Source: Bugula neritina
Lineage: Eukaryota; Animalia; Bryozoa
Direction of reading: 5' to 3'
Length of the DNA stretch: 41,806 bases
Assembly: GCA_964035545.1 (NCBI GenBank)
Contig: CAXIUT010000032.1
Span: forward strand, 32,694-74,499
A program made the translations under genes and the position numbers. Of this stretch, positions 2-40,957 are shown piece after piece (positions within the stretch are counted from its first letter, which is position 1; each line of letters starts with the position of its first letter). A model generated the notes under the pieces. That model was not told the origin of the DNA. It saw only the letters and a list, made by a program, of their open reading frames with translations, and did no database searches.

Positions 2-73
2 GATGGTAAGCTGTTTTCAGCCTGTGAAGATGGATTTGTTCGAGTATTTGACCTCCAAAAGATCAACTTGTGA
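2..73 (+). CDS. 3' end of a WD40-repeat protein (partial, runs off window start)
   Basis: Frame 2 reads DGKLFSACEDGFVRVFDLQKINL then TGA, a typical terminal WD40 blade (LFSAxxDGxVRVFD). Confidence 0.7.
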   Translation, partial: DGKLFSACEDGFVRVFDLQKINL

Positions 74-347
74 TTTATTTAACTTATTATCGACTTATCT
101 TACTTACTCTAAATACATTATCTTTTTTATTCTTTATTATTTTAAGATAAGTGACTTTTTGAATTATTTTGACATATTTTCATTTATTCAAATATATTCG
201 AAACATTAAATAACAATTTCACCCATAAAAAAGAAAAATAGTATTACTTTTGATTGATCGATATATCATAGAAATATCATTCAGAGAAGTTCAATGAAAC
301 AAGAATCTTTTTCAACAAATTCTTGTTGCCTAAAATATCTAATACTT

Positions 348-960
348 ATGGATTACTTATCTTTGTCCCCTTTATCTCACATTCAGAACATTCTTTCTCG
401 ACTTTCTACGCAGCCGCATCTTAAACCACCTACTCAACCATTTGCTCTTGAATCATCTCAATCCAATCATTCTTTTTTTAACTTAGTTTTAACTCTTCAG
501 AACTTTACTTCCGACCCATTGGATATTAATATATCTTTTTAGCCTTTTAGTATTTATCAAATAGAACTTTTGGGTCGTTATAAGGAGAAGTCAAACTAAG
601 ATTTTTTCTAAGATCTTGTTTTTTGAACCAGTAATTACAATGAAATACAAGTTCTTCATATTACTATCTATCAGGCAATAGACTTTATCTTCTACAAAAT
701 CTGATATTTTTACTAGAAAAGAGTCTCATAACTTCTATCATATCATGATAGTGTTTGAAGTAGACAAAGAACCTTCTTTTTGAATTAACGAAATAGAACT
801 GTATTCCTTGAGGAATCATTTTGAGAGACTGCCTTAACTACAAAACTAGGCAGTTCAAAAGGTTAACATGAGGAGGCATACGCAATATTTATATTAATAT
901 TATATCAAATTTATGTACAGTCTAATCTCATATTCATTCAACCTCAATAAGTGTGAGATG
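348..960 (+). CDS. Hypothetical protein, weakly TRAPPC13-like; frame disrupted by apparent indels, boundaries uncertain
   Basis: MDYLSLSPLSHIQNILSRL... is open with TAR=Glu to ~625. Other frames continue with segments such as RTVFLE and TQYLY, reminiscent of TRAPPC13. At least one frame change is needed. Confidence 0.3.
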
Positions 961-1140
961 GTGAAATATCAAAAGGATAATATAATAAAAATGAGATATC
1001 AAAGGATAATAAAATAAAAATGAGATATCAAAGGATAAATATAATAAATATGAGATATCAAAGGATAATATAATCAATATGAGATATCAAAGGATAATAT
1101 AATAAATATGAGATATCAAAGGATAATAAAATAAAAATAG
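961..1140. repeat. Tandem minisatellite, ~6 copies of ~29-nt unit ATGAGATATCAAAGGATAATATAATAAAT
   Basis: Directly visible head-to-tail repeats with no spacers, between convergent ORFs. Confidence 0.9.
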
Positions 1141-1152
1141 ACTAGATAATAA

Positions 1153-2087
1153 TCATAAAGATGGAAATTTCAATACAACTAGTTGTTTGATTTATTTGAG
1201 CCATTGATTGATATTTTAATCTAATTAGTTTTTTTTCTACTCCTGCTACTTTCATACTAGTAGCCACTTCAATGACTCGAACGACAAAGGTTTCCTTTAT
1301 TATTAAACTAACAACAAACTTTTACCACTTAGTAATATATTTACCAAATAGATGTACAAACATGGCAGATATAACATACAAAAGGACCCAAAAGGTTCCC
1401 TCTCCATTTCTATCCTCGCAATCAAGCATATTATTCTCCAACTGGTGTAGAGTTCTGACAGTAGGAGTCAGCATTTGTCTGAGAGTAGGTTTATAGAGAT
1501 AGCTTCCCATCAAAGATGGATATAATACGATTGTCTTAGCTATTAGGTTACCTTTTGATGCTGCTGATAAATTAACAGCTAGTTTTTATGATGTCTAATT
1601 GATAACTTATGGTATGATGTCATGCAAGTGTTTAGTCAAACTATAATAAAACCTCTACAACTGTCTTGAATCTTTAAAAACTATTTATTATCAGTATTTC
1701 GTAGTGAAATTCCATTCTTTTATAACTAATTTCTGGCCAACTCAACCTTCTGCAACACCCTATTATATTTTTACGAATAAGCTTATTAATACAATTGGTC
1801 AAAACAGGATCAAGAGTTTTGATTATATCCTTTCTTTTAGCAAATAGCTTCTTGCGTAGAGAGGCAGCCAAAGGACAACTCTCCGGTAAGTCACAATATG
1901 TATTTTGTGGGAGATCTACTTACTAATTATCACCTTTATTCATAAATTAGAGTTTATCATTATAGAAATTATAAAAGCTAGGCTCAAAATATGAGTAAAA
2001 AAGGTTATTCTCAGTATAAAAGTACTCGAGACTCACTATGACCTTTAAAATCATTATTTTTAACAGTGTTTTTACACCTAATACCAT
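1153..2087 (-). CDS. Hypothetical helical protein with two probable single-base indels
   Basis: ORF-track pieces 1947-2141 and 1674-1871 join via TAR=Glu. A second frame (includes 1322-1513) is open ~150 codons. The most protein-like end is ...QWLKEIKQLVVLKFPSL-TGA(T) at 1153. Confidence 0.45.
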
Positions 2088-2185
2088 CGTGAAGAGTCCC
2101 TTTCTTCCATTAAAACAAATTTTAAAATCAATTAATTTCAAAGATGATTCTACTTTAATATTTTCATTTTGAATAATATTAATAA

Positions 2186-3084
2186 ATGATATTGCTGATA
2201 TTTTTGTGGTTAGTTCCCTGTCATTTTCAAAAATCTTTTCTTCTCACTTCTTCTGTCGGTTACTATAACTATCGACAACTTTCTAATGCCTTTGAAGTCT
2301 ACCAAAAACTCAAATAATATCACTATGAAGACCATAATATTCTTTTATTCTTTCCTTAAAACGTAGCCTGCTGCTAAAAAAACGCTCTTCAAGGGTCTGT
2401 CTCATTCAGAGATAACGACTACACCAACATCAATCGCAATCTTTAAGGAGACTATGCATATCATACCTTCAATAGTCAAAGTGCAGCCTAAACCATGACC
2501 TTCAAGTATTCACATAGACTTCTTAACAACAAAAAACTGACCTTCGATAACCAACCTTACTTTCTCTATCTAACTGGTCATGGTGGTGACTTTTACTTCA
2601 AAATAAGATAGAGGTAGGCTTTAGTCGCTCAAAATTTTTAACATCTTTTCCATGACCTTTCCTATCGTAAACCTAAAATGGCCACATTTATTTTGGTTGA
2701 TTCCTGTTCAGCTATAACTCCCTACTAGGGAGTAGAAGAAGAGAACGTGATAATTTAGCAAGTTCATCAGTTAGATAATAATCACTATCGAAAGGGTATG
2801 ATAAGGTTTTGAACGGTCCAAAATCAGATTAATTTACATTTTACCTTTCTTAATTTTTATAAAACAACAATCCCTTGAAAACAAACACCACTATAAGAAG
2901 TTATACGACTATCTAGATTACAATAAACTAAAAGTCCATGCTAAAATAATTACCAAAAACAAAAAAAAACAAAAAAAGACTCCTAAAAGAATTCATCACC
3001 TCAAAAATAAACATAAAAACCCTCTAGCCAACTCTAACAGCACCAGATTCCTTTGCTAAATATATCTTTTCAACTGACGAATGA
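2186..3084 (+). CDS. GPI8: GPI transamidase catalytic subunit (GPI8/PIG-K, peptidase C13); apparent frameshifts near 2755 and ~2895-2970
   Basis: Signal peptide, YYNYRQLSNA (cf. NYRH), catalytic-His motif YLTGHGG, catalytic-Cys motif VDSCSA. LASSSVREESLS and DEFTFYLSEFLE follow after a -1 shift in a T-run. Confidence 0.85.
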
Positions 3085-3141
3085 TATTTTATATCAACTA
3101 TCATATCATATTGGTATCAAAATTATATATATTTTATTTTA

Positions 3142-3411
3142 ATGCAAAAGATATTTTCATTGACTATCTTCATCGTCCTTTTCCTCTTGGCTGTCAGTAT
3201 TTAATCTAGAAAGCAAAGTATAAATCGAAGAAGTTAAAGCAAAATATAGAATTAATTAAATATTTCAATATGGAGTTGTTTTTGGTGGCTATTTATTAAC
3301 TTTATTACTCTATTAGGATTCTTTAGCTGGTTCCTATGCTGTGCTGTCCCTTGTACCTTCAAAATAGCACTTTTCTTTAACAATCACATCTACAGAAAGT
3401 TCATCAACTGA
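3142..3411 (+). CDS. Small secreted/membrane protein (89 aa)
   Basis: MQKIFSLTIFIVLFLLAVSIE signal peptide, basic linker, Trp/Cys-rich hydrophobic C-terminal half; single open frame to TGA(T). Confidence 0.6.
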
Positions 3412-3506
3412 TCTATAAACAATCAATCTATGTTATTCGTCTATTATTTTATATAAAACTATTTAAAACACCTATTTAGGAATAGAATCAAACAATATAT
3501 TAATTA

Positions 3507-3646
3507 TAGCTTATATTAGTGAAACTTACTTAGTAGTAGCTTATATTAGTGAAACTTACTTAATTGTAGTTAATATTAGTAAAATTTACTAAGTAGTAGC
3601 TTATATTAGTGAAACTTACTTAGTAGTCGCTTATATTAGTGAAACG
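3507..3646. repeat. Tandem minisatellite, ~4.6 copies of 30-nt unit AGCTTATATTAGTGAAACTTACTTAGTAGT
   Basis: Directly visible; ends ~57 nt upstream of the dynein ATG. Confidence 0.9.
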
Positions 3647-3702
3647 TAATTAATTTAAATATAAGTTTGCGACATAGATTGTATCTTCATTATTTAAATT
3701 GA

Positions 3703-6700
3703 ATGCAGGAACAAAAAAGCTACATCCTCCACAACATCAAAACACTCCTTCATCTCGATTAACCTCCCTATGAACTAGTAGAATCTCAAGCCATAGACAA
3801 GTTCATCACCTCAGACACTGACTCTTTAATCATCAACTCTCTACCCACCAAATAGTTCAAAGTACTAGCTCCCAACTCCAATCCGACTGAAGGCACTCTG
3901 CTACAAATAAGCAAATTCAAAGGAGATGGATCTATAAGAGACTTTTATAACTTCAGCATCAGACCAGTCGAAGGTTTCAGACAACTTGCCAAACAGATAA
4001 TGCATCTATATGAGCCAGTAGCCAATAGAACAAAACATCCATCTTTGATGCAAGTTAAAGAACTTAAAGCTGTTTTGGAAAGTTCTTTCAAAAGAAAGTT
4101 TACAGGATAAAGTGATCTTAGCTTTACTACTTTTTAAGAATAAATGGATTTTTGGCAATAAATAGATATGGAAAGTCCGACTCCTAGAGTCTCATTCTTC
4201 CTCAAGTAATATGCTACTATCAGCAAAAGTTGGAAAAATTCTAAAGGAGGAGTTGAACTAGGTCGTCTAGGAACTCTCATCGAAACCACCTGGGCAGTCC
4301 TCTTCAATATCTGGTAAAGTCCACACTAATACAACAGCAAACGCTTTTCTCATTTGGTAGAAGTATTTGAAAGCTAGGTGAAAACAAGTATAAGACTATC
4401 ATTTGCTAAAGAAAGTGACCTACAATAACCAACTTTCGATATCAGACAAATGATAATCGAGGCAATTCAATGTTGTAGTAACTTTTTATCCCTTTTGAAA
4501 GAACATAGTGAAAGGTCAAGAAGGAAGTTACCTGTAATAAAAGTGAAGATAATATAGGAATTAAAGGATAAGATAATGGGAACTTATAGGACTAAAAGCA
4601 AAGTATAGTTTTTGTTGAGATTGTTCAATCAAAATATGATAACATAAGATCCAGTAAGTTTAATGTTTTTAGTAAAGGCATAAAATTTTATGTCTAGTTT
4701 TGTGAGTCAATTCAAAAACAATCCTAAAGCAGTCGCTAAATTATAAAAATAAAAATAAAAATTATCAACCTTAACAGCTGCAGCCTTACCTGTCTTTGAA
4801 TAATAACTTAAGTCTGTCATCGATAGAACCAGTCTGCAATACCTATTTAAATTACTATAAAAATGGTTTTACTTTTTGGCTTAACCTCAATTTGCATAGC
4901 ATACAGTCTAATACCAAGACACTGCCTTGAAGAAATCAATAGAATATTTATAAAAATATTATCAAGATAAAAGTAAAGGATAAGGTAATGAACCAACAAA
5001 GTTAAGTCAATTGTTAATAATATATAAAAAGATGCAATAGATCGATAATCTTATGAACGAATTCGGTCAAAATTCAACTGCAATGCCAACTTATAAAAAA
5101 AGATACGATAAATTATTATAAACATTAAAACACAATCAAAATACTCTCATAAAAGGATTCACGTCAAGGTACTAAAACAGTCTCACAGGTAAAGAAGGTA
5201 CTTCAATAGTAGGCAGACAAATAGCTTTATCAATATCAGAGAAAGGAATGATTTTTAGTTGGAGTAGATAGAGTGATATATTTATTTAGGAGGTATAATA
5301 GATGATGTAGCTTGGTTTTACTGGTCAGTTGGGAGATAGATTAATGAAGGGATGGTAGTAATCGAAGCAATATCATAAATAGAATAGTTACATCAGTAGT
5401 ATTTAGTCGAGATATAATTGGCTATAGAGTCAATTACAATTTTTTCAAAAGCATATGCTACAAAAAGAACTAAAGTAGGTCAGATAAGTAGTTTAACATC
5501 CTAAGATAACAAAGAAACTAAATGATTCACGCTATGAATGGAAATCTTTATAAGAAGCTAGTTAATATGGTACTATCTTGAATACAGTTGTGGATAAAAT
5601 GACTAACTATTTGAAATTATTCAATACTAGTTAGCTTTAAATATAATAGCTATCAATGTAGTTGCTAAATATAGACTTCAATCCCAATAACTTTTTTATT
5701 ATCTCACAAAAACTAGACCAAATATCAAAAATAATGGACATTGCCAGTATAAATAGAGATAGTCAACTTTGGAAAGACTACTGGTATAAAAAAATGACAG
5801 ATGTTATATAACTACAGTGGCAATAAACGCTAATCAAAGGAATAGATCTACCAATGACAGTCCATACTGTCTTATCTGGTAAAAAATGTACTTATGATCC
5901 TGATCTAAACTAACTAAAATAAAAGTATTTCAAATAGCTCAAACACTACCTAGGATGGCCTCTAGAACAAAAAGGACTCAACGGAGATCATCTCCTCGAG
6001 AATAGTGCAGAACTTATTACATAAATCTACAACAAAACTTAAAAACTATTTGACTTATTAGAATAAAGACTAAATAAATATGTTTCTTTCGAAAAAACAA
6101 TTATAATAGATTTAGATGCATTATAGTAGAAATTAGGCAGAGATGAAGGATAGTAGCTACTAGGAAAATTACTAACTTAACTAAAAGAATGTAAAAACCA
6201 GGCATAGTCAATCCAATAATAATAAAAAATAAGAAGTATATCAATTGATAACAATGGTCTCAAGGAAGGTCTCTGCTAAATATTAAATCAAATGATTTAA
6301 AATGTTATTGGACTTATCAAGTATTCCATTAAATTAGAAAGCTAACAAGTTTAGGAGTATATTGGCAGTGTCATGTCCAAACTATAAAGCAAACCTAATA
6401 ACATGGAATAGCTTGGGTAGGTTATTCAATAGTTCGATAAAATCAGACTCAACTAAAAATAAATATTGAACAAAATAAGTAAAATATAACAAAAAAATAG
6501 TAGCATCAGATCTGTGACAGGAACTGGATTCAATACTGTTAATATGCTAAAAAGATGGGATAACCTACAAATAGCCTCATTATAAATGGGCAATATACTC
6601 GAAGATCAAAGAGGCCGACTCCAACAATAAACCATCCGCAAAAGCTAAGCTCTAGAACATTAAGCCTCTAAAGTCTACAAAAAGTTCTAACATATCAAGC

Positions 6701-9700
6701 CCAGCAATGAACAACTCACAAGAGACCATGTTATGGAACTATATGGAAGAATCAAAGATTGGCAAACATAATGGAAAGAAGTCTAAGAAAAATATATAAA
6801 TATAGAAAAAGACATCAAACATTTCAACATGGAAATGCCTTCCTTCAAAGGATACCTCACTGTCAAAAGAAAACTAGATAACTAACTTGGTAACTGGATC
6901 TTCTTCATGGAGTATCGAGCAGAAGTATAGAAGTTCTAACCAGAAGAATGGATCACTTTCAGAGGAAGTCTCAACCGCTATTCAGATCTAGTTGGAGACT
7001 ATCATGCCAAATCCAAGTAACTTTCCACTTCTGATCCAATAGCCAAACTGATTAGATAGGTTCTAGAGGATAATAAAACATAAATCATTCTCCTTAGATC
7101 TCTTACAGGATAAAACTTTGAAAAATAACACTGGGGAATGCTCTTTTCCATCCTCAAAATTAAACATGTATCCTCTAGCGACAAGCTTACCTTTGGAGAT
7201 CTCATCAACTCGGATCTCATGTCTAAAGGAGACTAAATCAGATAGCTTGAGGCCAGAGCAAGAGGAGAGATGAACATCAGAATGGCAGTTGATGACCTTT
7301 AAGCCTGGTGTATCACTCGATAGTTCTAGCTAAGCGAGTACAACTCCATGGGAAGAGTAACAGCTTTAATAAAGTAATGGAAAGATGTTATGACAGAAGT
7401 ATCTGACCATCAGGCACTTGTAGCTTCAGTGAAATAGAACAGATATGCAACTAGATTTAAAGAGTAAATCGAGAAATATGAGGGTAAATTCAGTATTCTG
7501 GAGGGGTCACTTGTAAAGTTAAATCAGATTCAAAGGAAGTGGATATATTTGTAGCCAATATTTATGAGAGGAGCTTTACCATAAGAGCAAGGAAGATGGC
7601 GGAGATTAGATGAAGACTATAGGAACATAATGAATGGAATAGATATGAACCATCATGTGAGTGAACTTGCTAATATAGCTGGTTTTATAGATAGTCTAAC
7701 CAACATCATGGCTCATCTTTAAAGATGCCAAAAAGCTTTAAATGACTACCTCTAAGAAAAGAGAAACAAATTTCCAAGATTTTACTTTTTAGGTGATGAT
7801 GACATGTTATAAATTCTAGGACAATCACAAAATCCAGCCATCATTCAACTACATCTAAAGAAATTATTTTCTGGTATTCATACAGTCAAGTTTTCTGAAC
7901 AACAAGATAGAATATTAGCCATGAAGTCACATTTAAAAGAATAAGTACCTCTAACTCAAGAGATATAAGTCAGCGAAGTAGTCTAGAATTGGTTGGACTA
8001 GCTAAACAAAATGATGGTTGTTACATTGAAGTAGTCAACCCAGTCAGTTAAAAAACAAAAAATATAAAATTGCTTCTAAAATTATAGTTCACAAGTCATA
8101 TGTTTACTAAATTAACTCAACTTCAATGCTAAAACAGCGACAGCTATTCCCAGTGGTCGCTCTAATCTATAATCTCTCAAAAAGATACCCAATCTCTCTT
8201 ATCTTCTTTAACCAAACTTTGCCATGAGAATAAAGATTAACTTATTCTGGCCAAAATAAAATCTCTCATTCTTGATGTCATTCACCAAGTGTCAGTCCTA
8301 GATGCCTTGATTAATAGCAATATTAAAAGTACTAAAGAATGGATCTGGCATAAACAACTTAAAATCGTATAGTAAAATAGTAGTGTTAAACTACATATGG
8401 CCAACTCAGCCTTCAACTATACCTTCTAATATCAAGGAAATGCACAAAAACTTGTCTATACTCCTCTCACTGATAAGTGCTATCTCACTCTCACTCAAGC
8501 CATGTACATGGGTCTCGGTGGTAATCCCTATGGTCCAGCAGGAACAGGAAAAACAGAGTCAGTAAAAGCACTAGCTCTAGCTTTTGGCAGACAAGTACTT
8601 GTTTTCAATTGCGATGAAGGATTAGATTTCCAGTCAATGGGCAGAATTTTTATAGGATTAGTTAAATGTGGAGCATGGGGCTGTTTTGATGAGTTTAATA
8701 GACTGCTAGAGTAACAACTATCAGCTATCAGTCAACAAATTCAAATAATTCAAGAAGCAATCAAAGCCAAGTAAGAAGTAATAAATTTACTGGGCAAAAG
8801 AGTGGAAGTAAACTTCAATTCAGGTATATTTGTCACTTTGAACCCAGCAGGCAAAGGATATGGAGGTAGATCAAAACTACCAGACAACTTAAAACAATTA
8901 TTTAGACCTGTCGCCATGTCAATCCCAGATAATTAACTTATCGCAGAAGTACTTCTTTTTGCTGAAGGATTTAACACAGCCAAAATTTTAGCTCAAAAAA
9001 TAATAACCATTTTCACTTTATCAAAACAACTTCTATCAAGACAACTGCACTATGATTGGGGACTAAGGGCTCTTAAGACCATTTTGACAGTTGCAGGAAG
9101 ACTAGTGTTCTAGTAGAAATAAAATATCAATGAATCGATTGAAAGTTAAATCTTGATAAAAGCTCTAAGAATTAACACGATAAGTAAATTAACTTTTACA
9201 GATATGCTTAAATTTAATGTATTAGTATAAGATGTTTTTCCAGGCATTAATATCAAAGATATCGTTTATCAAAAAATAACTGAAGCTGTAGGATAAGTCT
9301 TCAAATAATAAAAATTTTAAATGCTATCTAATCAACTCAATAAAATCCTTCAATTCTATGAAGCCACGAAGCAAAGAATCGGAGCTGTATTGGTTGGTCC
9401 TTCAGGATGCGGAAAGACAACTATATGGAGAAGTCTTAAGAAAGCTTATGATAAGTTAGGACAGCAGGTAAAAGTCCATGTAATAAATCCAAAAGCAATG
9501 CCCAGGTCATCATTTTTAGGACACATGAACAACGACACACGTTAATTTGCTGAAGGGGTACTGACAGTATCAGCCCGTGATGTAGTAAAATAAGATTCTG
9601 ACGTACTAAACTGGATAATATGCGATGGAGATGTTGATCCTGAGTGGATTTAAGCTCTTAACAGTGTACTAGATGACAACCACTTGTTAACTTTACCTAC

Positions 9701-12700
9701 AGGTTAGCGTATATCGTTTGGATCTAATGTGAACTTTATATTTTAGACTGATAACCTTCAATTTGCATCACCAGCTACAGTCTCAAGAATGGGAATGATC
9801 TTCATGAACGATGAAGATATCAACATCAATAGTATAATAAAGAAATGGACTAAAAAATTAAATAAAGAACAAATGTTTATTTAGTAACAGGTAGGATTCA
9901 TAGAATAGATATGTAGCAAGATATGGAAATATAATTAAAAACAAATAGTATCAACAACTAAAGTAGGATTAGTTAGAAGTGCACTATCTCTACTTCATGA
10001 TGTTAAAAATTAACAATAATTCAAATTAAACCTAGTCAAAGGATTATCCTCTAATTTCGATCATTAAATCAGAGGCATTGTCTTCGAGACTGTCTTTAAT
10101 AAACCTATTCCAGGAGGCAGAGATCCTCTCTCTCTAAGAATCAATAATGCCAAGCTAACTGACTTCAAAGACTAGTAAACTACTGAAGTACAAAAAATAT
10201 ACATGACAAAATAACTAAAAAAAGATGTTGAAGTAGTAAAGGGATGGATCAAAGGAGGTAGTAACCTGATAATAGTTGGTCGATAAGGTTGTGGTAAATC
10301 TCTACTCCTCGAAGCCAGTGTGCAACAAATTTAAGAGACATAAAAATGCAAAGTAATAACAATTCATTGTAACAGAGAGACCAAAGCAAAAGTATTAATT
10401 CAAAAGTTATATCAAAGCTGTCATAGAGCCACTTCAGCAACAGGAAAGATCCTTAAACCTCTCAACTGCAGCAAACAAATATTCGTTCTTAAATAGATCA
10501 ACCTGGCCAGACCAGATAAATACAATACCATTGAACTGATCACCTTTTTGCAATCGATTATTTCACATGAAGGGTTCTACGATCACAACCTTTAGTTTGT
10601 GAGAATCGGCGATGGTATTCAATTTGTTTGCATAATGAAGCCATCAAGTACGATAGGTAGATTTTAGATAACAACGAGATTTGTAAGTAATTTGAGAGTA
10701 TTATCAGTTGATTATAACTCAGTAGGTGTACAACAAAAACTTGACCTTCTTACTCCTCATGCTGATATAGTTAACAATAAACTAAATCAATTCTGGGATT
10801 GTCTTCAATAAAATTTCAAACCAGATGATAACGCTCACTATCTCTTCAGTCCTAGAAATTTAAATGCCATCGTAGATAGTCTATAAAAATATCAAATTAA
10901 TCTCAAAAGTGCTTAAGAAGTAATATCAGCCATAAGAAACGAAGCAGTTAAACAGTTCTAGGATCGACTGGTGAATAACTAAGCCAAAAAATAATTTACT
11001 AAATTAATTAGACCCATCTTTGGCAACCAAAAAGATATCATTTATACCATATAAGATAATAAACTTAAAGCCATCTCCAGACAATAATATAAATAAATAC
11101 TAATTAAAACTATCAAATCATATTAAAGTTAAATAAGAGATGTTAATTTGATACTAGTTGAAGAAGTTGTCGATTTGTTTTCTTCTCTTTAAAGAAAGTT
11201 TATAGAAGGGGGTGCCATGTTGATGGCAGGCGTCTCAGGTAATCTTAGAAAAACTGCACTAAGAATAGCTGCTTTCAAAAACAAACTGCCCATCTACACC
11301 CTCTCTAATGCCAGAAACCTGTCTCTTAAAGATTTTTATAAAGATCTCAAAGCAGCTCTTTAAGTAGCAGGAGGACAAAATAAACAAATAGTTTTATTCC
11401 TTGAAGAACATCAGCTTGGTCGTAGCTAGTTTTATTAAAAGATAAACTCTCTGATAAGTGCAGGATAAGTTGAAGGTTTATTTAATAGTGATGAGATCTA
11501 AGGAGTCACTCAAGATATATAAGTACTTAGGACATAATGTATGGGCAAAACTTTGTATGAAGCCTTTATTTAAAGAATAAAAAAGAATGTAGTAATAGTT
11601 TTAAGTATGGACCACAGAAATAAGCAATTTTATTAGATATGTTCCTCAAATCCAGCTTTTTACTCAACCTGCAGAATAATATGGATGAATTGCTATTCGA
11701 AATAATCTATGAGTAAAATATTTTAGTAGAGAACTAAACACCTCAACGTTAAATAAATAAAATAATTAAACCAGGCAATTGTGACAATTCATGAGGGAAG
11801 TTCTTATACCTATAGCAAATTAATAAACAATTTTTTAAGTGTATTTTAAAAGACACAATCAAAAAGTGGCAATAAATTAGATAAATTAACTATGGGTCTT
11901 AAAAAATTAGTATAAACAGCAAAAACTGTTGATACTTTAACTGCCTAAGCAATGAGTAAAAAGAAATTATTAACTGTCAAACAAAAATAAGCAGATTAAT
12001 CTCTCAACTATATCACTGATGCAATGCAAGAAGCATCTGCCAGTAAAGCTGAAGCATAAAAACTACAAGTTTATTTATAAGTTTAAGAAAAAAAAATATC
12101 AAAAGATAGAAAAATAGTCATGACCTAATTATAAAAAGTACTACCTCTAATTGAAGAAGCTAAAGAAGCTGTTAATGGTCTACAATCAAGAAATATCCAA
12201 CAAATAAGGTCATTTATGAATCCACCAGAAGCAGTCAGATATGTACTCAAAGCAGTCTTAGCTTTATTCGGTAATAAAGATGATAGTTGGAACTCTATGA
12301 AAAACTTTTTGAAAGTATGCAAAGATCAAATCCTTATTTTTGATATCAAATCTGTCTCAGAAAAAATAAGAAGAGAAGTTTAAAGTATTATTAGCTAACA
12401 TGCTTTCTTTTTCCAAAGATAAAATGTTTTCAAAGCTTCCCAAGATGCTGTCCCTCTTGCTGATTGGGTCAAAGCTGCCATCTAGTACAGTAAAACCTAT
12501 GAAAAAGTAAGACCTTTAGAGGAAAATTTAACTAAAATATAAAAAGAATTAGCTAGATCTAAAATAAGATATGAATAATGTGCTACAAAAGTGAATGAAT
12601 CTTAACAAAAGATAAGAGTTTTGAATGAGAACTTTGTCAAGAAGACCAACTAAGCTTAAATACTAAAATAATAGCTAAAGAAGGCAGAAATAGCTATGTC

Positions 12701-15976: not shown

Positions 15977-16070
15977 TCTCATTTAGTCAATTCCTATTTA
16001 AAATATTCAATCAATATATCAAACAATATTATTATTCATATTTTGTGATATAATTAGTGATATATTAATA

Positions 16071-26009: not shown

Positions 26010-26066
26010 ATATTGTTCTTATTATTTAGATATAAATAGTCAGAATTATCGACTTAAACTATCTTA

Positions 26067-28476: not shown

Positions 28477-28687
28477 TCGATTCTAATTATATAATCTTTA
28501 TCAAAAACATCTCATAAATAATCATCAAAATAGCATAAATAATCAAAACATTCTCGATGATGAGAAATAACATAAACTGAGTCACAATCAAAGCTAATAT
28601 AAATAATATATATTATTGAATATTCGATATAAGAATGTGTATTAAATCGTTGAATAATATAAATTACTAATAAACTAGTTACAAAAA

Positions 28688-29423
28688 ATGATAAAAACAA
28701 TACGCATGCGTCCCCGCTAAAAACCTCTCGTCATTCAATAGATAATTTACAACCATTTTGAAGAACCTCTCGACACCAACTCATAAGCATCATTCATAAA
28801 ACTATCAAACAACCCATCCAAATAATACACCAGCATCGACACCGACCCCTTCACCGCACTTGAACAAGACATAAGCAAGATGCAACAAAAATCAGCATTA
28901 AAACTACACAGCATAAAGAACAAATTAAATAGATTATAAGGATAGCGTCGATAGTAAGGAGTAAAGAGATGTAGGGCACTACTGTAAGAAGATAAATAAA
29001 ATATAAGAACAACTTTTCGATAGATAATTAATATAGAAGACAACTAAATAAAAGATGATTGCAAATTTTAGATGGATTAGAATTTAAATTACATCAAAAG
29101 CAAATAACTATCACCGAAAAAACAATCATAAACAAATAGTAAAAGTCAAAAATAGATAATTTTATTCACTAGAAAATTCAAGACAACTATCATAAACCAA
29201 AAGAATGAAGTCTAGCGGATAAGTCAACTCACAAGTATCTCTGACCAAAAGAATCAACAATAGAAACTGTTTGAAATCCAAGTAAAAGTAAAACACAAAA
29301 AAGGAATGTAGAAAAGAAGTTAGAAGTAGAAGCAGTAGTGTGTCTGGCAAGAAAGGTCGAGTCTATTAGGAGATCCTTTCCTTGTACTCTATCCCTAAAC
29401 TACTTGCAATGTAAGTCAAATGA
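28688..29423 (+). CDS. Hypothetical coiled-coil protein; 3' end uncertain (29423 or 29440)
   Basis: Long TGA-free frame from ATG 28688; two alternative open frames after ~29160. Confidence 0.5.
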
Positions 29424-29499
29424 TATCTATCTTATAGTGAAGAGTATCTATCTATCTTATAGTGAAGGGTATCTATCTATCTTATAGTAAACAGTATCT
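29424..29499. repeat. Short tandem repeat, ~3 copies of ~25-nt TATCTATCTATCTTATAGTGAAGRG
   Basis: Directly visible between convergent genes. Confidence 0.8.
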
Positions 29500-29519
29500 T
29501 TAAATAATAACAGTGCCTA

Positions 29520-30279
29520 TCATCGATATATTCTAAATATCTGTACTCTCTGGTCGTTATAATCGGGATGATACCCTTCTATTTTCTGATAGTTGATTTC
29601 TTTTTCAATCAAATACAACTCCAAAGTCCTGCTCTACAGATAATCGTCGGATTGCTATAATTTCTTTCTAAAAAACAAACCATCATTCCATCCTTTCCCA
29701 TCCATCTCAACTGATACTTCAAATCGTTCAATCCTCCTCCCTAGCAAACCACAGTCATGTTTATCTTAGATAGCAAATGAACTAAACACTCCTCTTTCTG
29801 CTCTGATGAAGTGCTCGATTGACATGACATCTCTTCACACTTACCCAAACACTACTCCTTTTTCCTTTGTTATTATATTAAGTACCAATTAGCAACCACA
29901 AATTCTACTTTCCCTTTGATCATCGACTTGTTCAGTGATACGTTTCTCTATGCCAGATCTTTGACAGAAGACACATCTGCCATCACTACGTTGACTCCTA
30001 GACAACCTAGATATATTCCTAACAGGCCAGTTCCACAACCAAGCTCAAGTACTGTTTTACCTGATAGTGAAATAGCTCCTTCTTCTATGAGAAAATGCAA
30101 AGTTTTAGCCAATACTATAGCCTAGATAGATAAGATAGTACTGAAGTGGAGGTCCTGGCTCCTGAACCAACAAGCATATTACTACTCTATAACACCCGAA
30201 TCACATTTCCTTCGATAAAATCTTCATAGTCGTCCAGCTTTATCTGTTTTGGAAATATTGATGACTACTATGCATACAT
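29520..30279 (-). CDS. Class I SAM-dependent protein lysine methyltransferase (METTL21-like); introns 30122-30141 and 29865-29885; 3' structure uncertain
   Basis: AIVLAKTL, motif I GKTVLELGCGTGLLGI, VVMAD; C-terminal HPDYNDQRVQIFRIYR. Confidence 0.8.
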
Positions 30280-30425
30280 AGTTGATAATAATAAACAATA
30301 ATAACTAAGCATTAACTATTCAGTCATATTTTATAAATTAACCCTTCATATTTATAAATTAATATTAATGTACATATAATAAGACTTTAATAAAATAAGA
30401 ATTGACTGGCAATATCACTAAACTA

Positions 30426-30912
30426 TCATTTATGCATTCTCTATTTTATATTCCATTTATTCAATATCAGACACCTAGAATATTCTTCAACAATTTTCTA
30501 AAATAACCACATCCGTACCACTTTATCCTCCTCACTCATATAACTCCAATCTCTCTAGACCAACTTCAACAACTCCATAGGATTCAACTCAGGATACTTC
30601 TATTCCGCCTGCTTAATGATACTTTGCTTCCAAAGATGCTAGGCCAATATCGAAGAATTACTATTAGAAATCCAACTAAAAAAAGAATTACACTTCTTTG
30701 TTATATCCACGATCTTCATATCATCTCATTTACAAACTACTGAGCAGGCAATGAATTCATATTGTCCATATCAGCATCAAGATCTATTACTTCTTGAATA
30801 GCCGGTCGGTTTTTCTGTCTTGTCTTCTTCACCTACCTTCGTCAAATCAATCTTACTTTATATTGCCATTCTCTTTCTACTTTTTCGATAAAATCTTTTG
30901 TGAGTTAGACAT
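30426..30912 (-). CDS. HMG-box protein; introns 30837-30856, 30714-30733, ~30675-30692 (uncertain), 30498-30518
   Basis: IKQAEEKYPELNPMELLKLVERDWSYMSEEDK HMG-box pattern; several 20-21-nt introns. Confidence 0.7.
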
Positions 30913-30989
30913 ATCAAATATTTATCATATTCAATATTATTCAAAATTTATTTATAAACTCTTAAAATATATCAATAATGATTGGATGA

Positions 30990-31736
30990 TCACTCTTCAA
31001 CACTTTTTTACACCTTTTATACCCTCTACTAGATAACTTGCTCCTAAATTTACACCTAAAAGTCTTCAATGTTATCAATGTTGTCAATCAACTCCTGAAA
31101 AGAATATTCTTAACCTTTGAAAAATTGTTAAATCTTCTTCTTATTGTTCTACATCCATTCTATCAACTATCCTTAACGTTTAGCCTCTTCTTACAGCCTT
31201 TACTCCTTCAGTAGCTCTTCATCCAATGCCTCTTGATCACCAAAATATTCCTAGTCGATAGATCTTCTGATCTGAGCTGTTGTTTTAGCAGGGGCAACAG
31301 GTATTTCTCTTTTGTAGACATCTTTAACCCCTGGAAGATCTTTAGCTGCTCCAAAATAACGATATCCTCCAAATCCTGGAATTTCCCTTCCCTGAGCATC
31401 AAACATCTTAGCGCTTTTGATAGCCCGATAGTCACTTCCTCCCAACTATTTAATTCTGATTTCCCAATGATAAAGCTATCTCAGCAGACGATTGATTTAA
31501 TCATTAAGAGCTCTAACTTAGTTTTATGGTCTGGCTCTATTTTGTATTTCTTAAACTTTTTAGATGATATGAGTTGTAACTTGTTTTCTCCATCTTTAAC
31601 ATTCATAAAGATCATTAATTTATCTAATATGACGAAGTCCCTTAGGCCTCTAATCTTCTTACTTATTCACCAAGGACCTCTTCATCGCCCACCAACGGTT
31701 CAACATCCCCTGAGCCTTCTCACAATTTCTTGCCAT
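30990..31736 (-). CDS. ISY1: Pre-mRNA splicing factor ISY1
   Basis: MARNCEKAQGMLNRW, RALNDEINRLLRE, HWEIRIKELGGSDY, GYRYFGAAKDLPGV; single frame, 248 aa. Confidence 0.93.
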
Positions 31737-31817
31737 TTATAAGAGAACTAGTAATATATTATAAATAGTATCAACATAAAGAAGAAATTATATGAAAAAA
31801 GTCATAAATCTATGATA

Positions 31818-33095
31818 TCAATCAGATTTATCGTGCTTTCTTGAATGACCGAGTACATTTCGACCGATTCCTTCTAACACGTCCCATACTGTATATACAA
31901 ACAAAAGAAACATAATAAGACAGTTAATAAGATTACCTTTTATTAGTAATGAATAAAATAACTCAGGTAATTTACTCCTTCTGGGGTTGGGGTTGGGGTT
32001 GGGGTTGGGGTTGGGGTTGGGGTTGGGGTTGGGGTTGGGGTTGGGTTTTCTTTATTATTCAATCAGACCGATAACTTATTGAATTTTACTAAGAAATCCA
32101 TCTTTAGTCAGTTGAGCAATATGCATGTGTTCTGGAGGCAATACCTATCCAACACCTCCAACATTACTAGTAATAACATGTAGTCCAAGACTAGCTGCTT
32201 CTACAATAGCTATCCCAAAAGATTAGGTCAATGCCGTATTCAAAAATATATGACATCTTTTAACGATTTCTAGTGCTTTTTGATTAGGCAACCCGCCATG
32301 AACAACGGTTCTAGATTCTAATGAGTTTATTTTGATCATTTCTTTCATAGGTTTCATTTTAGGACCATCTCCTATCAACTATATAATCACGTTAGAATTC
32401 ACTTTGCATAATTATGGTAACAATTCTATCAATATATCAATTCCTCTCCGAAAAACCATTCTACTACATAAAACCAATCGAATTGGACTATTCTTGTTTT
32501 ACTATTATTGTTTTTATTGATGAATAAAACGTGTTTAAACTGAATTGGGTATAACGATAGATTTACTACAACGTTGTTTATTGCGAATTAGTAAATTATT
32601 ACGAGTAGCCCTTGACACACAAATAAATTTATCAAAAAGTAAATGAATAGGAGTCAAAACCCAAGGAAATATTATCCCATCCAACTTTTTAAATTCAAAA
32701 AGAGAGTGCTAAGTCAACACTACTCTCAAGCCCAAGTGATATCCCTGTGTTCCAAAGGTTATTCCAAGAGGACTAGTCGATTGATGAGTATGTACCACGT
32801 CTATCTACTCATCAACTAATATTCTCTTATGCTGAGGATAATCACTAACAAAATTAGGAAATGATATATTAGTATTTCTGAAAAAAAATGAAGGCAAATA
32901 GTATGTTTTTATTCCCTAAATATACTTAATACCATAGTAGTCAGGAGGATAGCAATGTGTTACCACTATTACCTTGCGTACTCTTTCCTTTAGTATCTTA
33001 CTCATCTCTAATATATGCACCTCAACTCCTCCCAAACTCGGATAGAAGAAGTCACTCACAAGAGCAATAGCCATATCTTTCTTTTTCTTCATCAT
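31818..33095 (-). CDS. PIGA: GPI-GlcNAc transferase catalytic subunit PIG-A/GPI3, interrupted in frame by a telomeric tract at 31983-32045
   Basis: VSDFFYPSLGGVEVHI, KVIVVTH, HIFLNTALTESFGIAIVEAASLGL, VGGVGEVLP. A TM-like C-terminus (LINCLIMFLLFVYTVW) lies in the same frame beyond the tract. Confidence 0.9.
31983..32045 (+). repeat. Internal telomeric tract GGGG(TTGGGG)9TTGGG (63 nt)
   Basis: Perfect telomeric repeat inside the PIG-A coding region. Confidence 0.97.
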
Positions 33096-34740: not shown

Positions 34741-34759
34741 TTCAAATTAAATATTTTAA

Positions 34760-35524: not shown

Positions 35525-36286
35525 ATGATAGAGAATTAGCAGATTGCACCCCTAGTTATTGGGTATTATCCTTTCAGAGCCAAAGCGCAAGTATTGCGTC
35601 TTATTTGTGAGTATTTACATATCCCTTATCACGACCGTTTCTTCAACCCAGACTAGTGGATGAAGTTCAAAGACGGAGATGCAAAAAAGTGGGTTATCAA
35701 GGACTTTCCCTACCTACAACATGCTGATTTTGTCCTTACAGGCACTCATGCAATGGTTGGTTATGTTGTTGAACTGGCATAAAGACCTGATTTGCTAGGA
35801 AAAACATAAGAAGATAAGATAAGTATCGATAGATTCAGAAGTACTTATGACTTGAAAGATATCATTATTGCCTTTCTTTGCAATAGCAGACCTACCAATA
35901 ATCAAGAAAAACTTGAAAGAAAGCGAAAAATGGATGAGCTTTATGAAAGAAAAATAGACCATTAAATGAAATCACATGAGAAAGCTTGTCAAGCTAATGA
36001 CTTCTACTTTGGATATTTGACTGTGATTGACTTTGCTATTTATGAGATAGTTAATCATTTTCGCCTTCTTTTCCCTCAATAAACAGCTAAATATGTGAAA
36101 TTGAATCAGATCAGAGACAGAGTAGCAGCTTTGAAGGAAATTCAAGAGTACTAAAATTCTTAAAGAGCCGTACGTCAATACTGTCCAATAAAATACTTCA
36201 AAAATTTTAAAGAAGAGAAATTAAGACTAGCAAGGAGAGCAAGTAGCAACGCATCAACAACAAATGAAAAACAATTATAACCATGA
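35525..36286 (+). CDS. Glutathione S-transferase, mu-class-like
   Basis: IGYYPFRAKAQVLRLICEY, DFPYL, RPDLLGKTEEDK, FYFGYLTVIDFAIYE. Confidence 0.85.
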
Positions 36287-36373
36287 TCTAAAATTAAATG
36301 ATAATAATTTATAAAGATAAAATATGATAATATCAATAGAATAATGAAATAATAAAATATTTGACTTAGATAA

Positions 36374-37713
36374 TCAATGCGACAGTTCTGCAAGTATACT
36401 CGACATGATTCCAGCCAACGAATCATCAGAAAATCCAATAATCATCAACTAAGATTCATATTTTTTGAGATATATCTTTGATAATTACGATGAAGACATA
36501 TTGCTCAGAGTCAATGCTGCGAATTGAACCAATTTCTCCTGATTTTTCATATGTTGAAGTATGCCAATTATAATATTAAGGAGACATTCATTTTTGAGCA
36601 ACTCCTCTCTTGATTGAGCACTGATATCAGTAACAAAAGCCAATATCTAAAACACCTGTTCTTTCAATTCAATCGATACCTACATTGACATCAATACTCT
36701 GAGCAAAGGTTTGATATTTTGAGTAACAGCAGGAGCAAGAGTTTAATCTCGTTCATCAACCAACCCTCTCAACAGCTAGATGGACCCTTAGACTTATTCT
36801 ACCTTATCATCGAGTATGGCAGAATCGATTTCTTTGATAATTTGATGACAGTCCCATCCGACTTTAACCAATCCATTCATAATATCAACAATATTTTTCG
36901 AACACTAGCAATCGAAACTAGTATTAAACATATTGACCAATAGTTGAAATACAGGCGTCCCAAGCATAAATTTCAAATTCATGGGATTCATAGTTAAGTT
37001 TCTAAAGATGAGAGTGATTGTTCTTAAGTCTTCAAATTCTTGTTAATTTTTGGGAGGATGAATGTTATGAGTATAGTTAGATAGTGCACTAAATATCTTC
37101 TCATAATTTTAAAACAAAAAAGGATTGTGATTGTTCACACTATAAAGAATCAACATATTCAATGAATAAGTGATATCTTTTCGTGACATAAATGAATCCA
37201 AACCCAATATTATCTTCTTTATCTAGGTTTTTGTTATATTCAACCTGTTCTTATTCAAATAAAACTGCTTCTTGCTCTACTACTACTCCTATAATGTACG
37301 ACTTATGTCACTCAAAACATTCGTATAATCATCCTTCTTTTGACTATTCTGATAATCTGTCTTCACTATTTTCCTTGGCATGCCCAAAACTATCGTTGCC
37401 TCTTCTTCATTACTCTATTCCCCGAAATAGTTTTTCTTCTCAAAAGATAAAATGTATCTTTTGTAGTAATATTTAACTCCTTAAGGCTTCCCTTCAACTT
37501 CCTGACTGATCTATGTCCATTATTTTCGATTTGTCACTGCCTAAATACTAAAAATCTTACATGAAATCCCCCTCTACGACATACAAGTTGGTATAATTTG
37601 AAAGGATTGTACTAAAAATCGAAGTCTGCATTGTCAATGATGCTATTAGACAGTAAGAAGTCAGTCAGAGTTTGTCTAAATTTGTTCTATTACTCTACTT
37701 AGTTTGTTTTCAT
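36374..37713 (-). CDS. ARID/BRIGHT-domain protein with BAF250_C-like region (ARID1/SWI1-like SWI/SNF subunit); intron 37541-37560
   Basis: FKLYQLVCRRGGFHAVTNRKEWTEI...YYYKRYILSFE ARID motif, downstream EIAYSLNML, C-terminal SSILAELSH; 439 aa after removing a 20-nt intron. Confidence 0.8.
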
Positions 37714-37893
37714 CTTATATTATATTAATTTGATTAAATAATTAGGCTCAAATAATATCTATTGATTTTATAAATAATCAATTATGTTAGGATTCACAAC
37801 TTTTATCAAAAGACTATCTCTAGTTATATTTGTTTTATTGATATTTATTTTATTAACAACAATGATAGACTCTGATAATAAATTGATATTTCA

Positions 37894-39899
37894 ATGGGAA
37901 ACTAAAATACAAGTCCTCTTCAGCAAAAACCAGTCGAAATAGCACAAAATACATAAGAAATATACAAAGTTATCACCAATCGCTTTCTCTCCTCACAAAT
38001 CTACAAAGGAAAACCTCCTCAAGGATGGATCACACCCATTCAAAAGCAAACCAATCTCTCAAACTCATCTCTTGGAGCAAGCAACACTAGAGATGCTTTA
38101 ACTGACAGCTCATCGTAACTGAAAGACAGTCGATCAGGCACTAAAATACTAAATATTGTTGAACCTTAACAAGTATCCTATCCTCAAAGTTGTATAGGAT
38201 ATATTTAGATGTAGGAATAGGGGAAGATAATAATGACTGGAAGTGCATTTTTGGTTGGTCCTAGGACAGTACTAACTTGTGCTCATAACTGTATGAAAGT
38301 TGATGGTCATAAGTAGTATTCTTCTTTACATTTTTGTATCAAAAATGATGAAGAAACAGTCAGGATAAAGGTTAAAAAAGTACACTACCTAGACGGATGG
38401 TATCAATAAAAGCTGCCATAAGCATAAAACCATTTTGATTTTGCAGCTATCGAACTCTAAAAGAATATGGATCAAAATTATGGCTATATAGGAATGGCAT
38501 TCTAATTCTAACAGCTAAATCCTAGTACCAATATCACAATCATGAGTTACAATTCAGCATAAATACCATAACTTAGTGTTATGTAGACCAAATTAAGTGC
38601 AAATAGTGCTAAAATAATGAGTTTCAATGGTAGAGTCAATTCTAAAAGTTATGGAGCCCCATTATTAGTACAAAAAGACGGACAATGGCTTGCTTTTGGC
38701 ATCTGTCTCGCTCAAGATCAATCAGACAATTCAATCAGCAGAGGTTATAAACTATCCAAGCAAATATTCTAACTTCTCAATGCTACCTTTTCACAAGCAA
38801 TCGGTCTTGTCAATCTAAGTATAAATATAATTATCAAGAATATCGATGGATAAGCAACTAGAAAATGGAAAGAGTAATGAGATAAAAATATCAATTAGTC
38901 ACAAATTTAATTTTATAAGGCAATCGTATAGGACCTTCAGGAGTTGCTTATTTAGCCAATGGAGGATGGACAGAACTCACATACATCAATCTAGGTACTA
39001 TTAATAGTAGTTTCAGCCAACAACAACATCTAAGACAGTGGATTTGAAACTCTAACAACAGGCAAATGGTCAAAACTCAACACTCTTATGGTAGGTAAAT
39101 CAGACTGAATATAGGAAACAATGTGATAACCTCACAAAGCTTGCAGTATCTCAAAAATACCAACTGGACAGAACTATCTACTCTATCTATTTGTACCAGA
39201 TATTGCTATCATAGGTGAAAACAAGATAAAAAACAAAGGATTTGAAGCAATAGTTAACGGACCATGGACCAATATGACTAATTTGAACCTAAGTATCTAT
39301 CATTTTAAACACAGATCAAACTCATATCAATTGGGAAGCAATCAAAATGCTAGTTTAAGCCGGTTATACCAATCTCGAAGTCTTGGATATAGGTTATTTA
39401 TGATCATAATATAGGATCAAATAGAATTAGAGAATAAGGACTGAAATGGCTAGCCAAAGGAAACTGGTCTGACCTACATACTTTAGGATTAAGTAAAAAT
39501 ATCGATTACTAAAGACTAAAGTAGCATTACTGATGGAGGAATCGACCATTTGATCTCATCAAAATGGAATTATTTGAAAATAATCGATCTTTGTACTTAT
39601 ATTCTAACAACAGCTAGAAACCACTTGACTCATGTTGGACTGCAAAGCTTATTGAGATGCAACTGGCGAAAAATAAAAGATCTTAACCTAAGTATAAATA
39701 TTTTAATACGAGGATAGAACAAGATAACAATGGTCGGAGTAAGTGCGATGACAAGTGCCAGTTGGATAGCTCTATAGTAAGTTGATCTAAGTAATGATGA
39801 TATGAATTAGGATGGAACCAGTTGAGCGAAGGAGATCGTGAGGCTTTGAAGAAGATGCTAGGAAAATCATTTCCTAACATGAAGAGAATGTACATGTGA
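37894..39899 (+). CDS. Trypsin-like (V8-type) protease-fold domain fused to a 26-aa LRR array; 10 introns
   Basis: MGNENTS start; GSAFLVGPRTVLTCAHN, FDFAAIEL, KSYGAP. Introns at 38819-38838, 38995-39016, 39095-39114, 39193-39214, 39293-39314, 39393-39414, 39493-39514, 39593-39613, 39692-39712, 39791-39810 separate LxxLxLxxNxI repeats. Confidence 0.88.
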
Positions 39900-40129
39900 T
39901 CATCTTCTTCACATCTATTGAATCAAATAATATTAATCTATCAACTTCATAATAATAAGAAATGTATATTTTTCAAAAGATATGACATTAAATCCTTTTC
40001 TATTTCATTAATCAGTCTTAAACATGAGTATAAATAAGAATTAGTTTTTTGAAAGTTTTTAATTTTTAAATATTATGGTAGTCTATTCATTTCTACTTAG
40101 TTAACTGTAATAATATTATTTCCCAACAA

Positions 40130-40951
40130 ATGACTCAGTTAAGCTCAAAGACAGCCCTCCCAGTTGCTCTATCCCATCTCTATCTTCGTAGAACCTCTCT
40201 GTCCTTCCAGCATTTGTTCCTTTGTGATGAGTAGTCAGAAAACGAATCAATCAACATCAAACATTATGATCACTAATGCTAAGCCGTAAGTATAATAAAT
40301 GATTTTTTGAAGACTCGACTTCAAAATAGCCTTCTGAAAGGATTTCATTCAATTATTTCATACCAGGTATCTCATAGTGAGAACATTAAAACCCCTCCAA
40401 AAACTCAAAAAACAGCAGCTGATAAATATAACACTCAGAGAACATACATGAACACCAGTTTAAATGCATCGGAAGTAAGTCCAGGTCTTAAGATACAAAA
40501 TATGGGCAACTCAAGAGAATAGCATTTCGACTTAAACTCACATTAGAACTCTTTTGCAAGGCAGACCAAATCAGCAACTAATCTATCACTACTACTAAAC
40601 CGAGTAAAATAAATAAACAAAAGAAATGACTTCGAATATTCCACCAAACAAAACTACAGTTACCAACATCTGCCCAAAAAATAACAATATCAACACAAAC
40701 TACAAAGAAATCAAACTTACCATCACTATGAATTCCAAAAACCTACCTCCACACCTTAATACAAATATGGTTGTGGATGCAACAAATGGTAAAGCCAACA
40801 GTTTAGTCAAAAAAATACTAGAAGACAATTTATTTTAGATAAATTTAGTAAGATAGAAGACGGAATGAATCAACTTAAAAATAAATAAGGAAATAAATTA
40901 AAAAAACACTTTATGGATATCAGCACCATCAAAAACAAACTCAGATTATGA
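40130..40951 (+). CDS. Hypothetical protein (273 aa)
   Basis: Single TGA-free frame including ORF-track 40307-40522, ending TGA(T). Confidence 0.6.
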
Positions 40952-40957
40952 TCTATT

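Follow-up and report, generated by a model that had tools for sequence, protein, structure and literature searches.

UGA followed by U as a probable extended stop signal in peritrich-type ciliate DNA that reads UAA and UAG as glutamate

The 41,806-nucleotide stretch analysed here (the window; positions 32,694 to 74,499 of contig CAXIUT010000032.1, Bugula neritina assembly GCA_964035545.1) is macronuclear-type ciliate DNA with a peritrich-type genetic code, in which UAA and UAG are read as Glu and translation stops at UGA alone. Its genes end almost always in UGA followed by U (UGA-U, or TGAT in the DNA), so that the base after the stop codon, position +4, is nearly fixed. Direct observation shows the bias, its restriction to one position, its occurrence in related organisms and the absence of in-frame UGA. 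UGA-U is probably a real extended termination signal that selection maintains across the lineage, and UGA before A, C or G (UGA-V) does not serve as an amino-acid codon.

In the curated tally, TGAT closes 23 of 26 gene ends. The original prediction had set this bias against a T content of roughly one third, a figure that is accurate for the window (32.4%) and yet does not serve as a null, since TGAT makes up 40.8% of the 1,879 TGAN tetramers on both strands and T makes up 44.7% of the first 60 nt past stops. Measured against these two backgrounds, the tally gives P = 6.5e-7 (0.408) and P = 4.4e-6 (0.447), and the +4 base is thus non-random beyond local composition (23/26 T against 41–45% expected). 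The earlier description of the signal as near-absolute translates into about 88–100%, according to whether three exceptions, which have no support from homology, are real. Gene ends were located with a codon model trained on long open reading frames (ORFs), by which every TGA-bounded ORF was scored in bits, and with a dynamic-programming gene parse that allows micro-introns and optional frameshifts and is blind to the base after the stop; the gene models combine such ab initio parsing with partial homology. Two +4-blind parses return TGAT, without curation, at 20/30 (P = 0.004) and 20/27 (P = 0.0005) ends, and most of their non-T calls are model errors. Moreover, T follows 293 of 719 ORF ends scoring at least 0, which equals background, and 15 of 21 scoring at least 20 bits, while terminal single ORFs of at least 265 codons end in TGAT in 11 of 11 cases (0.408^11 = 5e-5). 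Genes of recognisable family all end in TGAT, and the exceptions are all orphans.

An artefact, in which base composition combines with a reader's picking of TGAT sites as stops, could draw on TGAT being the commonest TGAN (41%), on the T-rich 3' flanks (45%), on the occurrence of TGAT in more than one frame at several ends (29421/29438, 30415/30426, 29520/29609) and on the frame corrections beneath some of the predicted stops. It is scarcely credible, as parses blind to +4 recover the bias, the eleven unambiguous long terminal ORFs all carry TGAT, P stays at about 1e-6 even against the T content of the 3' flanks, and the bias persists in a relative with 25% T and a 27% TGAT background. Alignment with the orthologue also confirms the dynein-2 stop.

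The 23 TGAT coordinates of the original prediction all read as claimed, directly on the plus strand or as ATCA for the minus strand. That list, together with its one TGAG at 21929, holds for most of its sites as true stops and is incomplete, having missed a TGAT at 277 and two candidate TGAA ends at 29438 and 41300. Sites are graded as well supported (12 sites), plausible (8 sites), ambiguous, displaced or not checkable, and are named in the text by the lower coordinate of the TGA:

71–74, plus strand: TGAT, the first predicted stop; its gene lies mostly beyond the window, with 70 nt upstream inside
276–279, minus strand: TGAT stop missed by the original prediction; 216-codon ORF, 21.3 bits
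3082–3085, plus strand: TGAT, end of a GPI8-like (peptidase C13-like) gene; plausible, with a frame correction near 2760
3409–3412, plus strand: TGAT, end of a small hydrophobic ORF (ATG at 3143); plausible, weak coding score
15974–15977, plus strand: TGAT stop of the dynein-2 gene; well supported, 903-codon terminal ORF, C-terminus matching the orthologues on contigs L001, L011 and L012 of related organisms
16070–16073, minus strand: TGAT stop of a tubulin-tyrosine-ligase-like gene (16071–18788); well supported, 910 codons, 147 bits, Pfam TTL
18886–18889, minus strand: TGAT stop; well supported, 289-codon ORF
20128–20131, plus strand: TGAT stop of a membrane-protein-like ORF; plausible, 134 codons, 17.9 bits
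21381–21384, plus strand: TGAT stop of a multi-exon gene model (20256–21383); plausible, from the blind parse, last exon 13.8 bits
25049–25052, plus strand: TGAT stop; well supported, 717-codon ORF, 108 bits
25101–25104, minus strand: TGAT stop of a gene ELMO-like by inspection; well supported, 265 codons, convergent with 25049 and 50 nt away
26066–26069, minus strand: TGAT stop; plausible, 123-codon ORF, 21.7 bits
26503–26506, minus strand: TGAT stop of gene 26504–28476; plausible, reached past a 23-nt intron at 26750–26772
29519–29522, minus strand: TGAT, the predicted end of a methyltransferase-like gene; ambiguous, requires a frame correction
29608–29611, minus strand: TGAT ending the methyltransferase-like ORF 29609–30279; ambiguous C-terminal model, the alternative being 29520
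30414–30417, minus strand: TGAT stop of an HMG-box-like gene; in frame once the extra G at 30469 is added
30425–30428, minus strand: TGAT, the predicted HMG-box-like stop; in frame only in the uncorrected assembly
30989–30992, minus strand: TGAT stop of the Isy1 gene; well supported, 275-codon ORF, Pfam Isy1
31817–31820, minus strand: TGAT, end of a PIG-A-like ORF; plausible, the frame staying open through a (CCCCAA)n tract and then a transmembrane-like C-terminal segment
33149–33152, minus strand: TGAT stop; plausible, 148-codon ORF, 11.2 bits
34738–34741, plus strand: TGAT stop; well supported, 422-codon ORF, 54 bits
35454–35457, plus strand: TGAT stop of a Rab-like GTPase; well supported, Pfam Ras, prenylation-type C-terminus (...GCCG)
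36284–36287, plus strand: TGAT stop of a gene GST-like by inspection; well supported, 308-codon ORF
36373–36376, minus strand: TGAT stop; well supported, 419-codon ORF, convergent with 36284
39897–39900, plus strand: TGAT stop of a leucine-rich-repeat (LRR) gene (37894–39899); well supported, about nine micro-introns, last exon an in-frame LRR unit
40949–40952, plus strand: TGAT stop; well supported, 307-codon ORF

Three of the predicted sites, all TGAT, call for a correction or a caveat. The stop at 30426 moves to 30415, also TGAT, through a read-supported indel, an extra G after 30469 being present in contigs of three sequencing runs. The frame-corrected stop at 29520 has an alternative at 29609, again TGAT. 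The frame-corrected stop at 3082 is plausible, with its GPI8-type homology assigned by inspection of catalytic-site-like motifs (Pfam was blank on the short pieces); the last frame of this gene is uncertain at A9 and A7 runs within 2948–2976.

The flanks of the 23 curated stops place the constraint on one base. Position +4 is T in 23/23, and no other position between -21 and +47 rises above 15/23; the counts at +5 are A 8, C 6, G 1 and T 8, and later positions carry no constraint. Because +4 is the sole fixed flanking position, the constraint sits on a single base, and the stop itself lies outside any longer motif. Downstream, 60 nt past each of the 23 stops, TGA occurs 30 times against 18.9 expected and TGAT 18 times against 8.5 expected. 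TGAT accounts for 9/10 of the in-frame TGAs in these segments against 9/20 of the out-of-frame ones (Fisher P = 0.024), which, in small numbers, is the pattern to be expected if selection favoured functional backup stops. In 4/23 genes, again a small number, the first six codons past the stop include an in-frame TGA.

The same flanks are enriched in other short motifs. TATCA occurs 26 times in the 70 nt past the 23 stops against 5.7 expected (4.6-fold), TATCAT, TCATTA, CATTAT and TATCA are 4.5- to 9-fold enriched past stops on the sense strand, and TGATAT is present 115 times in the window against 55 expected. The TATCA-type motif may be a 3'-end or intergenic promoter motif, as the reverse complement of a GATA-like TGATA. 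These excesses, the convergent stops just 50–95 nt apart and the enrichment of downstream TGAT in more than one frame would suit an explanation in which U at +4 belongs to a non-termination signal overlapping the stop in very short 3' untranslated regions (3'UTRs), whether a cleavage/polyadenylation, mRNA-stability or transcription-termination element or a GATA-like DNA motif (TGATA/TATCA) serving the tight spacers between genes. Such a signal is improbable, given that +4 alone is fixed, that the downstream enrichment is tied to frame, that TGAT stands at the first in-frame TGA of long ORFs whatever the distance to the neighbouring gene, and that it is kept at orthologous stops whose flanks have diverged.

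The genetic code itself is well defined. TAA and TAG make up 4.1% and 2.4% of codons within long ORFs, which are bounded by TGA only. In protein alignment with the dynein-2 orthologue of L001, TAA of the window faces Glu 118, Asp 13 and Gln 5 times, and TAG faces Glu 45, Asp 5 and Gln 1 times; the earlier assignment of both codons to Glu is thereby borne out (163 alignments with Glu against 6 with Gln), and the same assignment holds in five related contigs (L001, L009, L010, L011 and L012). No TGA lies in frame among 9,663 curated codons, leaving UGA as the only termination codon. Micro-introns and G4T2 telomere-type repeats in the window fit an oligohymenophorean. Sanchez-Silva and colleagues reportedly gave UAA and UAG as Glu in the peritrich nuclear code in 2003. 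That code is NCBI table 30 (Swart et al. 2016, PMC4967479), and the window and the five related contigs share its Glu assignment and its TGA-only stops; searchable descriptions of the code are silent on the base after UGA, whereas a near-fixed U is described here.

The absence of in-frame TGA bears directly on a bolder part of the original prediction, namely that the tetranucleotide UGAU may be required for stopping and that UGA-A/C/G could be weak stops or sense codons. A four-base signal is a fair description of the data; a sense-codon, context-dependent code is not supported. In such a code UGA-U alone would stop, and UGA-A/C/G would specify an amino acid such as Trp or be read through efficiently. 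The near-invariance of U at stops would fit it, as would the TGAG at 21929 with its in-frame TGAT 16 codons on, and the TGAA at 41300 followed by three more in-frame TGA-V. However, the two other frames of the 9,663 curated codons hold 590 TGA, 381 of them TGA-V, against none in frame, and the dynein-2 ORFs of six organisms, about 19,000 codons, are likewise free of TGA. Were TGA-V neutral it would be common: a single transition turns TAA, which makes up 4.1% of codons, into TGA and would supply harmless TGA-V constantly, yet there is none, so TGA-V is selected against. UGA-V is therefore as unwelcome in reading frames as UGA-U and is still a stop, or at least disruptive, rather than an amino-acid codon. 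TGG stands at 1.0% of codons, a normal Trp level. A search for in-frame TGA-V with coding signal on both sides yields one good candidate, at 38878, which is intronic, and others that fall in a 29-bp array. No tRNA gene is found in the 41.8-kb window. On contig L001 (4806–4850), the TGAG stop of a CRAL-TRIO gene lies 40 nt upstream of the dynein-2 start and in frame with it, where readthrough would be costly. Sense use of a stop codon in frame, as in Condylostoma, is thus not seen, and the context-dependent code is very unlikely.

The bias extends to related organisms. L001 is a Logan contig with 45% GC and an intron-less dynein-2 orthologue, while L011 (29% GC) and L012 (38% GC) supply dynein-2 orthologues from a metagenome scan with C-terminal alignment; L009 and L010 hold the dynein ORF only and no gene ends, and L008, an unrelated organism with 70% GC, is excluded. 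The window and L001 proteins are alike in their final 14 residues save one I/L (...KLVLASAA[I/L]LLKDI), and both genes stop at TGAT. The L011 and L012 genes end at the same terminal residue with a TGAT stop, the bases beyond having diverged, so that the orthologous dynein-2 stops are TGAT in 4/4 (window, L001, L011 and L012). Blind parses of the relatives, in which the dynein ORF of each contig served to train its codon model, give TGAT at 8/9 ends in L012 and 5/8 in L001. L012 taken together with L015, a contig of the same organism (38% GC), gives 13/15, the two exceptions being a 33-codon call and an uncertain multi-intron model. The TGAT background is 34–35% in L012/L015 and 27% in L001, where T is 25% of bases. 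As the relatives differ in GC, the bias is independent of base composition, and it is a property of a clade with the UAA/UAG = Glu code in common.

In one convergent gene pair of L012 (16720–16725; L015 11703), the stops overlap in the palindrome TGATCA with no spacer, which provides TGA-T on each strand. TGATCA also occurs at the window stops 30990 and 39897.

The candidate ends that depart from TGAT, with the in-frame TGAT that follows the first of them, are:

21928–21931, minus strand: TGAG exception; 296-codon ORF, 14.6 bits, no homologues and no Pfam match
21880–21883, minus strand: in-frame TGAT, 16 codons past the TGAG at 21929
29438–29441, plus strand: TGAA exception ending the 342-codon ORF 28412–29440, which runs into a 25-bp tandem array
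41299–41302, minus strand: TGAA, a possible exception; small subtelomeric ORF, 13.4 bits, three further in-frame TGA-V within ten codons, no Pfam match

Pfam searches on stop-free pieces of 1–3700, 21400–22800, 28400–29500 and 40900–41800 gave no usable match, and the three exceptions are therefore without homology support. ORF 28412–29440 is clearly coding (frame score 29.7 against 9.3 and -14.8). Its last five codons and TGA lie inside the 25-bp array 29424–29499, a TGAT in another frame stands at 29421, 17 nt upstream of the TGAA, and a good 27-nt intron candidate at 29411–29437 would, if spliced, still yield a TGA-A end; an assembly error behind this TGAA is possible but unproven. The ORF ending at 41300 may not be a gene. 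An ORF entering the terminal telomere tract is considered a spurious gene, with a short ORF from an internal ATG as a possible alternative.

Several further ends were considered and rejected. Those at 8308 and 13728 are frame breaks inside dynein-2, which is colinear with the intron-less L001 orthologue; they are frameshift or indel sites, with perhaps one odd intron among them, and not stops. The frame breaks themselves, at about 8160 and about 13400, are absent from the L001 gene. The TGAA at 26740, which ends a 586-codon ORF, lies 10 nt past the canonical 23-nt GTA...TAG intron 26750–26772 and is out of frame because splicing of that intron shifts the reading frame. The TGA at 38878 falls inside a 25-nt GTAA...TAG micro-intron of the LRR gene, the ends at 39106 and 39823 reflect missed micro-introns of the same gene, and that at 36345 requires a false intron. 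The high-scoring non-T ends at 24127 and 24697 belong to off-frame ORFs within a longer gene.

The window has 31% GC (A 36.5, T 32.4, C 16.4, G 14.6%), with genes dense on both strands and convergent stops 50–95 nt apart. Pfam, run on stop-free pieces, identifies a dynein heavy chain on the plus strand (3703–15976; AAA_6, MT and AAA_9), which is dynein-2 by the names of its database matches, the TTL-family gene (16071–18788) and Isy1 (30990–31736) on the minus strand, and a Ras-family GTPase; the PIG-A-like ORF matches a glycosyltransferase family weakly. No rRNA or eRF1 gene is present in the 41.8-kb window. Introns measure 20–27 nt and have the form GTA...AG; these micro-introns are found in 38819–39899 and elsewhere, about nine of them in the LRR gene, and several, such as the one with GTAATGAG at 38875, have a TGA just past the donor site.

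Telomere-type (TTGGGG)n tracts occur in the same orientation at 21545–21639, 31982–32045 and 41720–41806, two internal and one at the window end. The internal tracts are in frame in minus-strand ORFs, as (Pro-Asn)n in the PIG-A-like gene and as (Gln-Pro)n in a small ORF (21515–21784). Contigs of two other runs span the tract at ~32 kb with a different repeat length, so this tract is real DNA and not an assembly join. Additionally, tandem arrays with units of 29, 30, 25 and 21 bp directly follow gene ends, at 962–1138, 3507–3652, 29424–29499 and 40961–41111, respectively. In the first, TGATAT recurs every 29 nt on the minus strand, which gives TGAT in all three frames within three units.

Several points weigh against a selected, lineage-wide UGA-U signal. 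The samples are small, with 26 gene ends in the window and 24 in relatives. If their models are right, the three non-TGAT candidates (21929, 29438 and 41300) mean that U is not obligatory, and each relative contig has one to three non-TGAT ends of its own. The assembly carries roughly one indel per 5–6 kb, so some stops can be misplaced, and the enrichment of TGATA/TATCA past stops means that part of the TGAT excess at gene ends may reflect a motif with no role in translation. The runs holding the window DNA are all genomic, and their contigs reveal neither splice joints nor transcript ends, so that gene ends and introns near them are predicted from sequence and any effect on termination efficiency is presumed. 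Finally, other eukaryotes favour purines at +4, not U, and the mechanism proposed below therefore needs a lineage-specific change.

In eukaryotic termination, compaction of the mRNA brings the +4 base into the A site. Of the stop codons UGA leaks most, and context decides how eRF1 fares against near-cognate tRNAs. From the bias and its distribution we infer a tie to termination efficiency, with a molecular cause that might run as follows. A cell left with one stop codon would also be rich in Glu-tRNAs reading UAA and UAG, of which the UUA-anticodon tRNA would be a near-cognate of UGA, pairing G with U at the middle base; Trp-tRNA is near-cognate too. Since both Glu- and Trp-tRNAs are near-cognate to UGA, termination would be a race between eRF1 and these tRNAs, and the +4 base would decide it. 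U at +4 would give the most reliable termination in this lineage, where eRF1 or the 18S rRNA pocket has possibly adapted, and UGA followed by A, C or G would still be harmful inside genes by stopping or stalling translation.

A stronger version is possible, though doubtful: the release machinery of peritrich-type ciliates would be effectively four-base specific, eRF1 or the 18S rRNA pocket for the +4 base having changed in this lineage, with UGA-U as the sole efficient terminator and UGA-V slow or leaky, purged from frames, and tolerated or used at a minority of ends for C-terminally extended isoforms. Readthrough of the TGAG at 21929 as far as the in-frame TGAT at 21881, for instance, would add 15 residues.

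Biases known at +4 are moderate in size, with purines preferred in most eukaryotes, whereas in several related organisms here one base, U, stands after about 90% of stops or more. Work on tetranucleotide stops and +4 effects (Tate and colleagues; Cridge et al. 2018, PMC5829715) likewise involves a non-random base past the stop and competition between eRF1 and near-cognate tRNAs; in mammalian cells UGAU is among the strong contexts, and UGAC is the only poor one (Cridge et al. 2018, PMC5829715). Ciliates with reassigned UAA/UAG and UGA as the sole stop offer another comparison: in Oligohymenophorea sp. PL0344, Tetrahymena and Paramecium, C is avoided after UGA and the first 3'UTR codons hold an excess of tandem in-frame backup UGAs, both pointing to selection against readthrough (McGowan et al. 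2023, PMC10553269). An in-frame TGA within six codons is found at 4/23 stops here, a rate similar to the 11.5–12.3% reported there, C avoidance there contrasts with U fixation here, and the backup stops here are TGAT in 9/10. The 3' regions are also very short in the ciliates Condylostoma, Parduczia and the karyorelicts (Swart et al. 2016, PMC4967479; Seah et al. 2022 preprint). In Condylostoma a flanking U is weakly preferred at stops and was judged insufficient to mark them (Swart et al. 2016, PMC4967479). Codes of this type have stop codons abundant in frame as sense codons and recognise stops by position near the transcript end, whereas genes of the window have no in-frame UGA and an almost invariant +4 base. 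A 2026 comparative study that includes three sequenced peritrichs (Vorticella campanula, Epistylis hentscheli and Campanella sinica) describes their narrow intron-length distributions and is silent on stop context (PMC13685798). Searches of the open full-text literature turned up no account of near-invariant UGAU in any ciliate, subscription journals lying outside this coverage.

Set beside these systems, UGA-U here probably represents the tetranucleotide stop signal in an extreme form that runs through a lineage. Since 1990, modest biases and reporter assays have fed an argument over whether eukaryotic stops comprise three bases or four. A lineage with one base past about nine in ten stops, in relatives of 29–45% GC, would be a natural extreme case for that question and a route to the eRF1 or rRNA residues that read the +4 base. 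It would also gauge the readthrough pressure under a one-stop-codon code and show whether context has to compensate once UAA and UAG no longer act as stops. For such genomes, gene finders could give TGAT heavy weight as a terminal signal, and the few ends in TGA-V are candidate sites of regulated readthrough.

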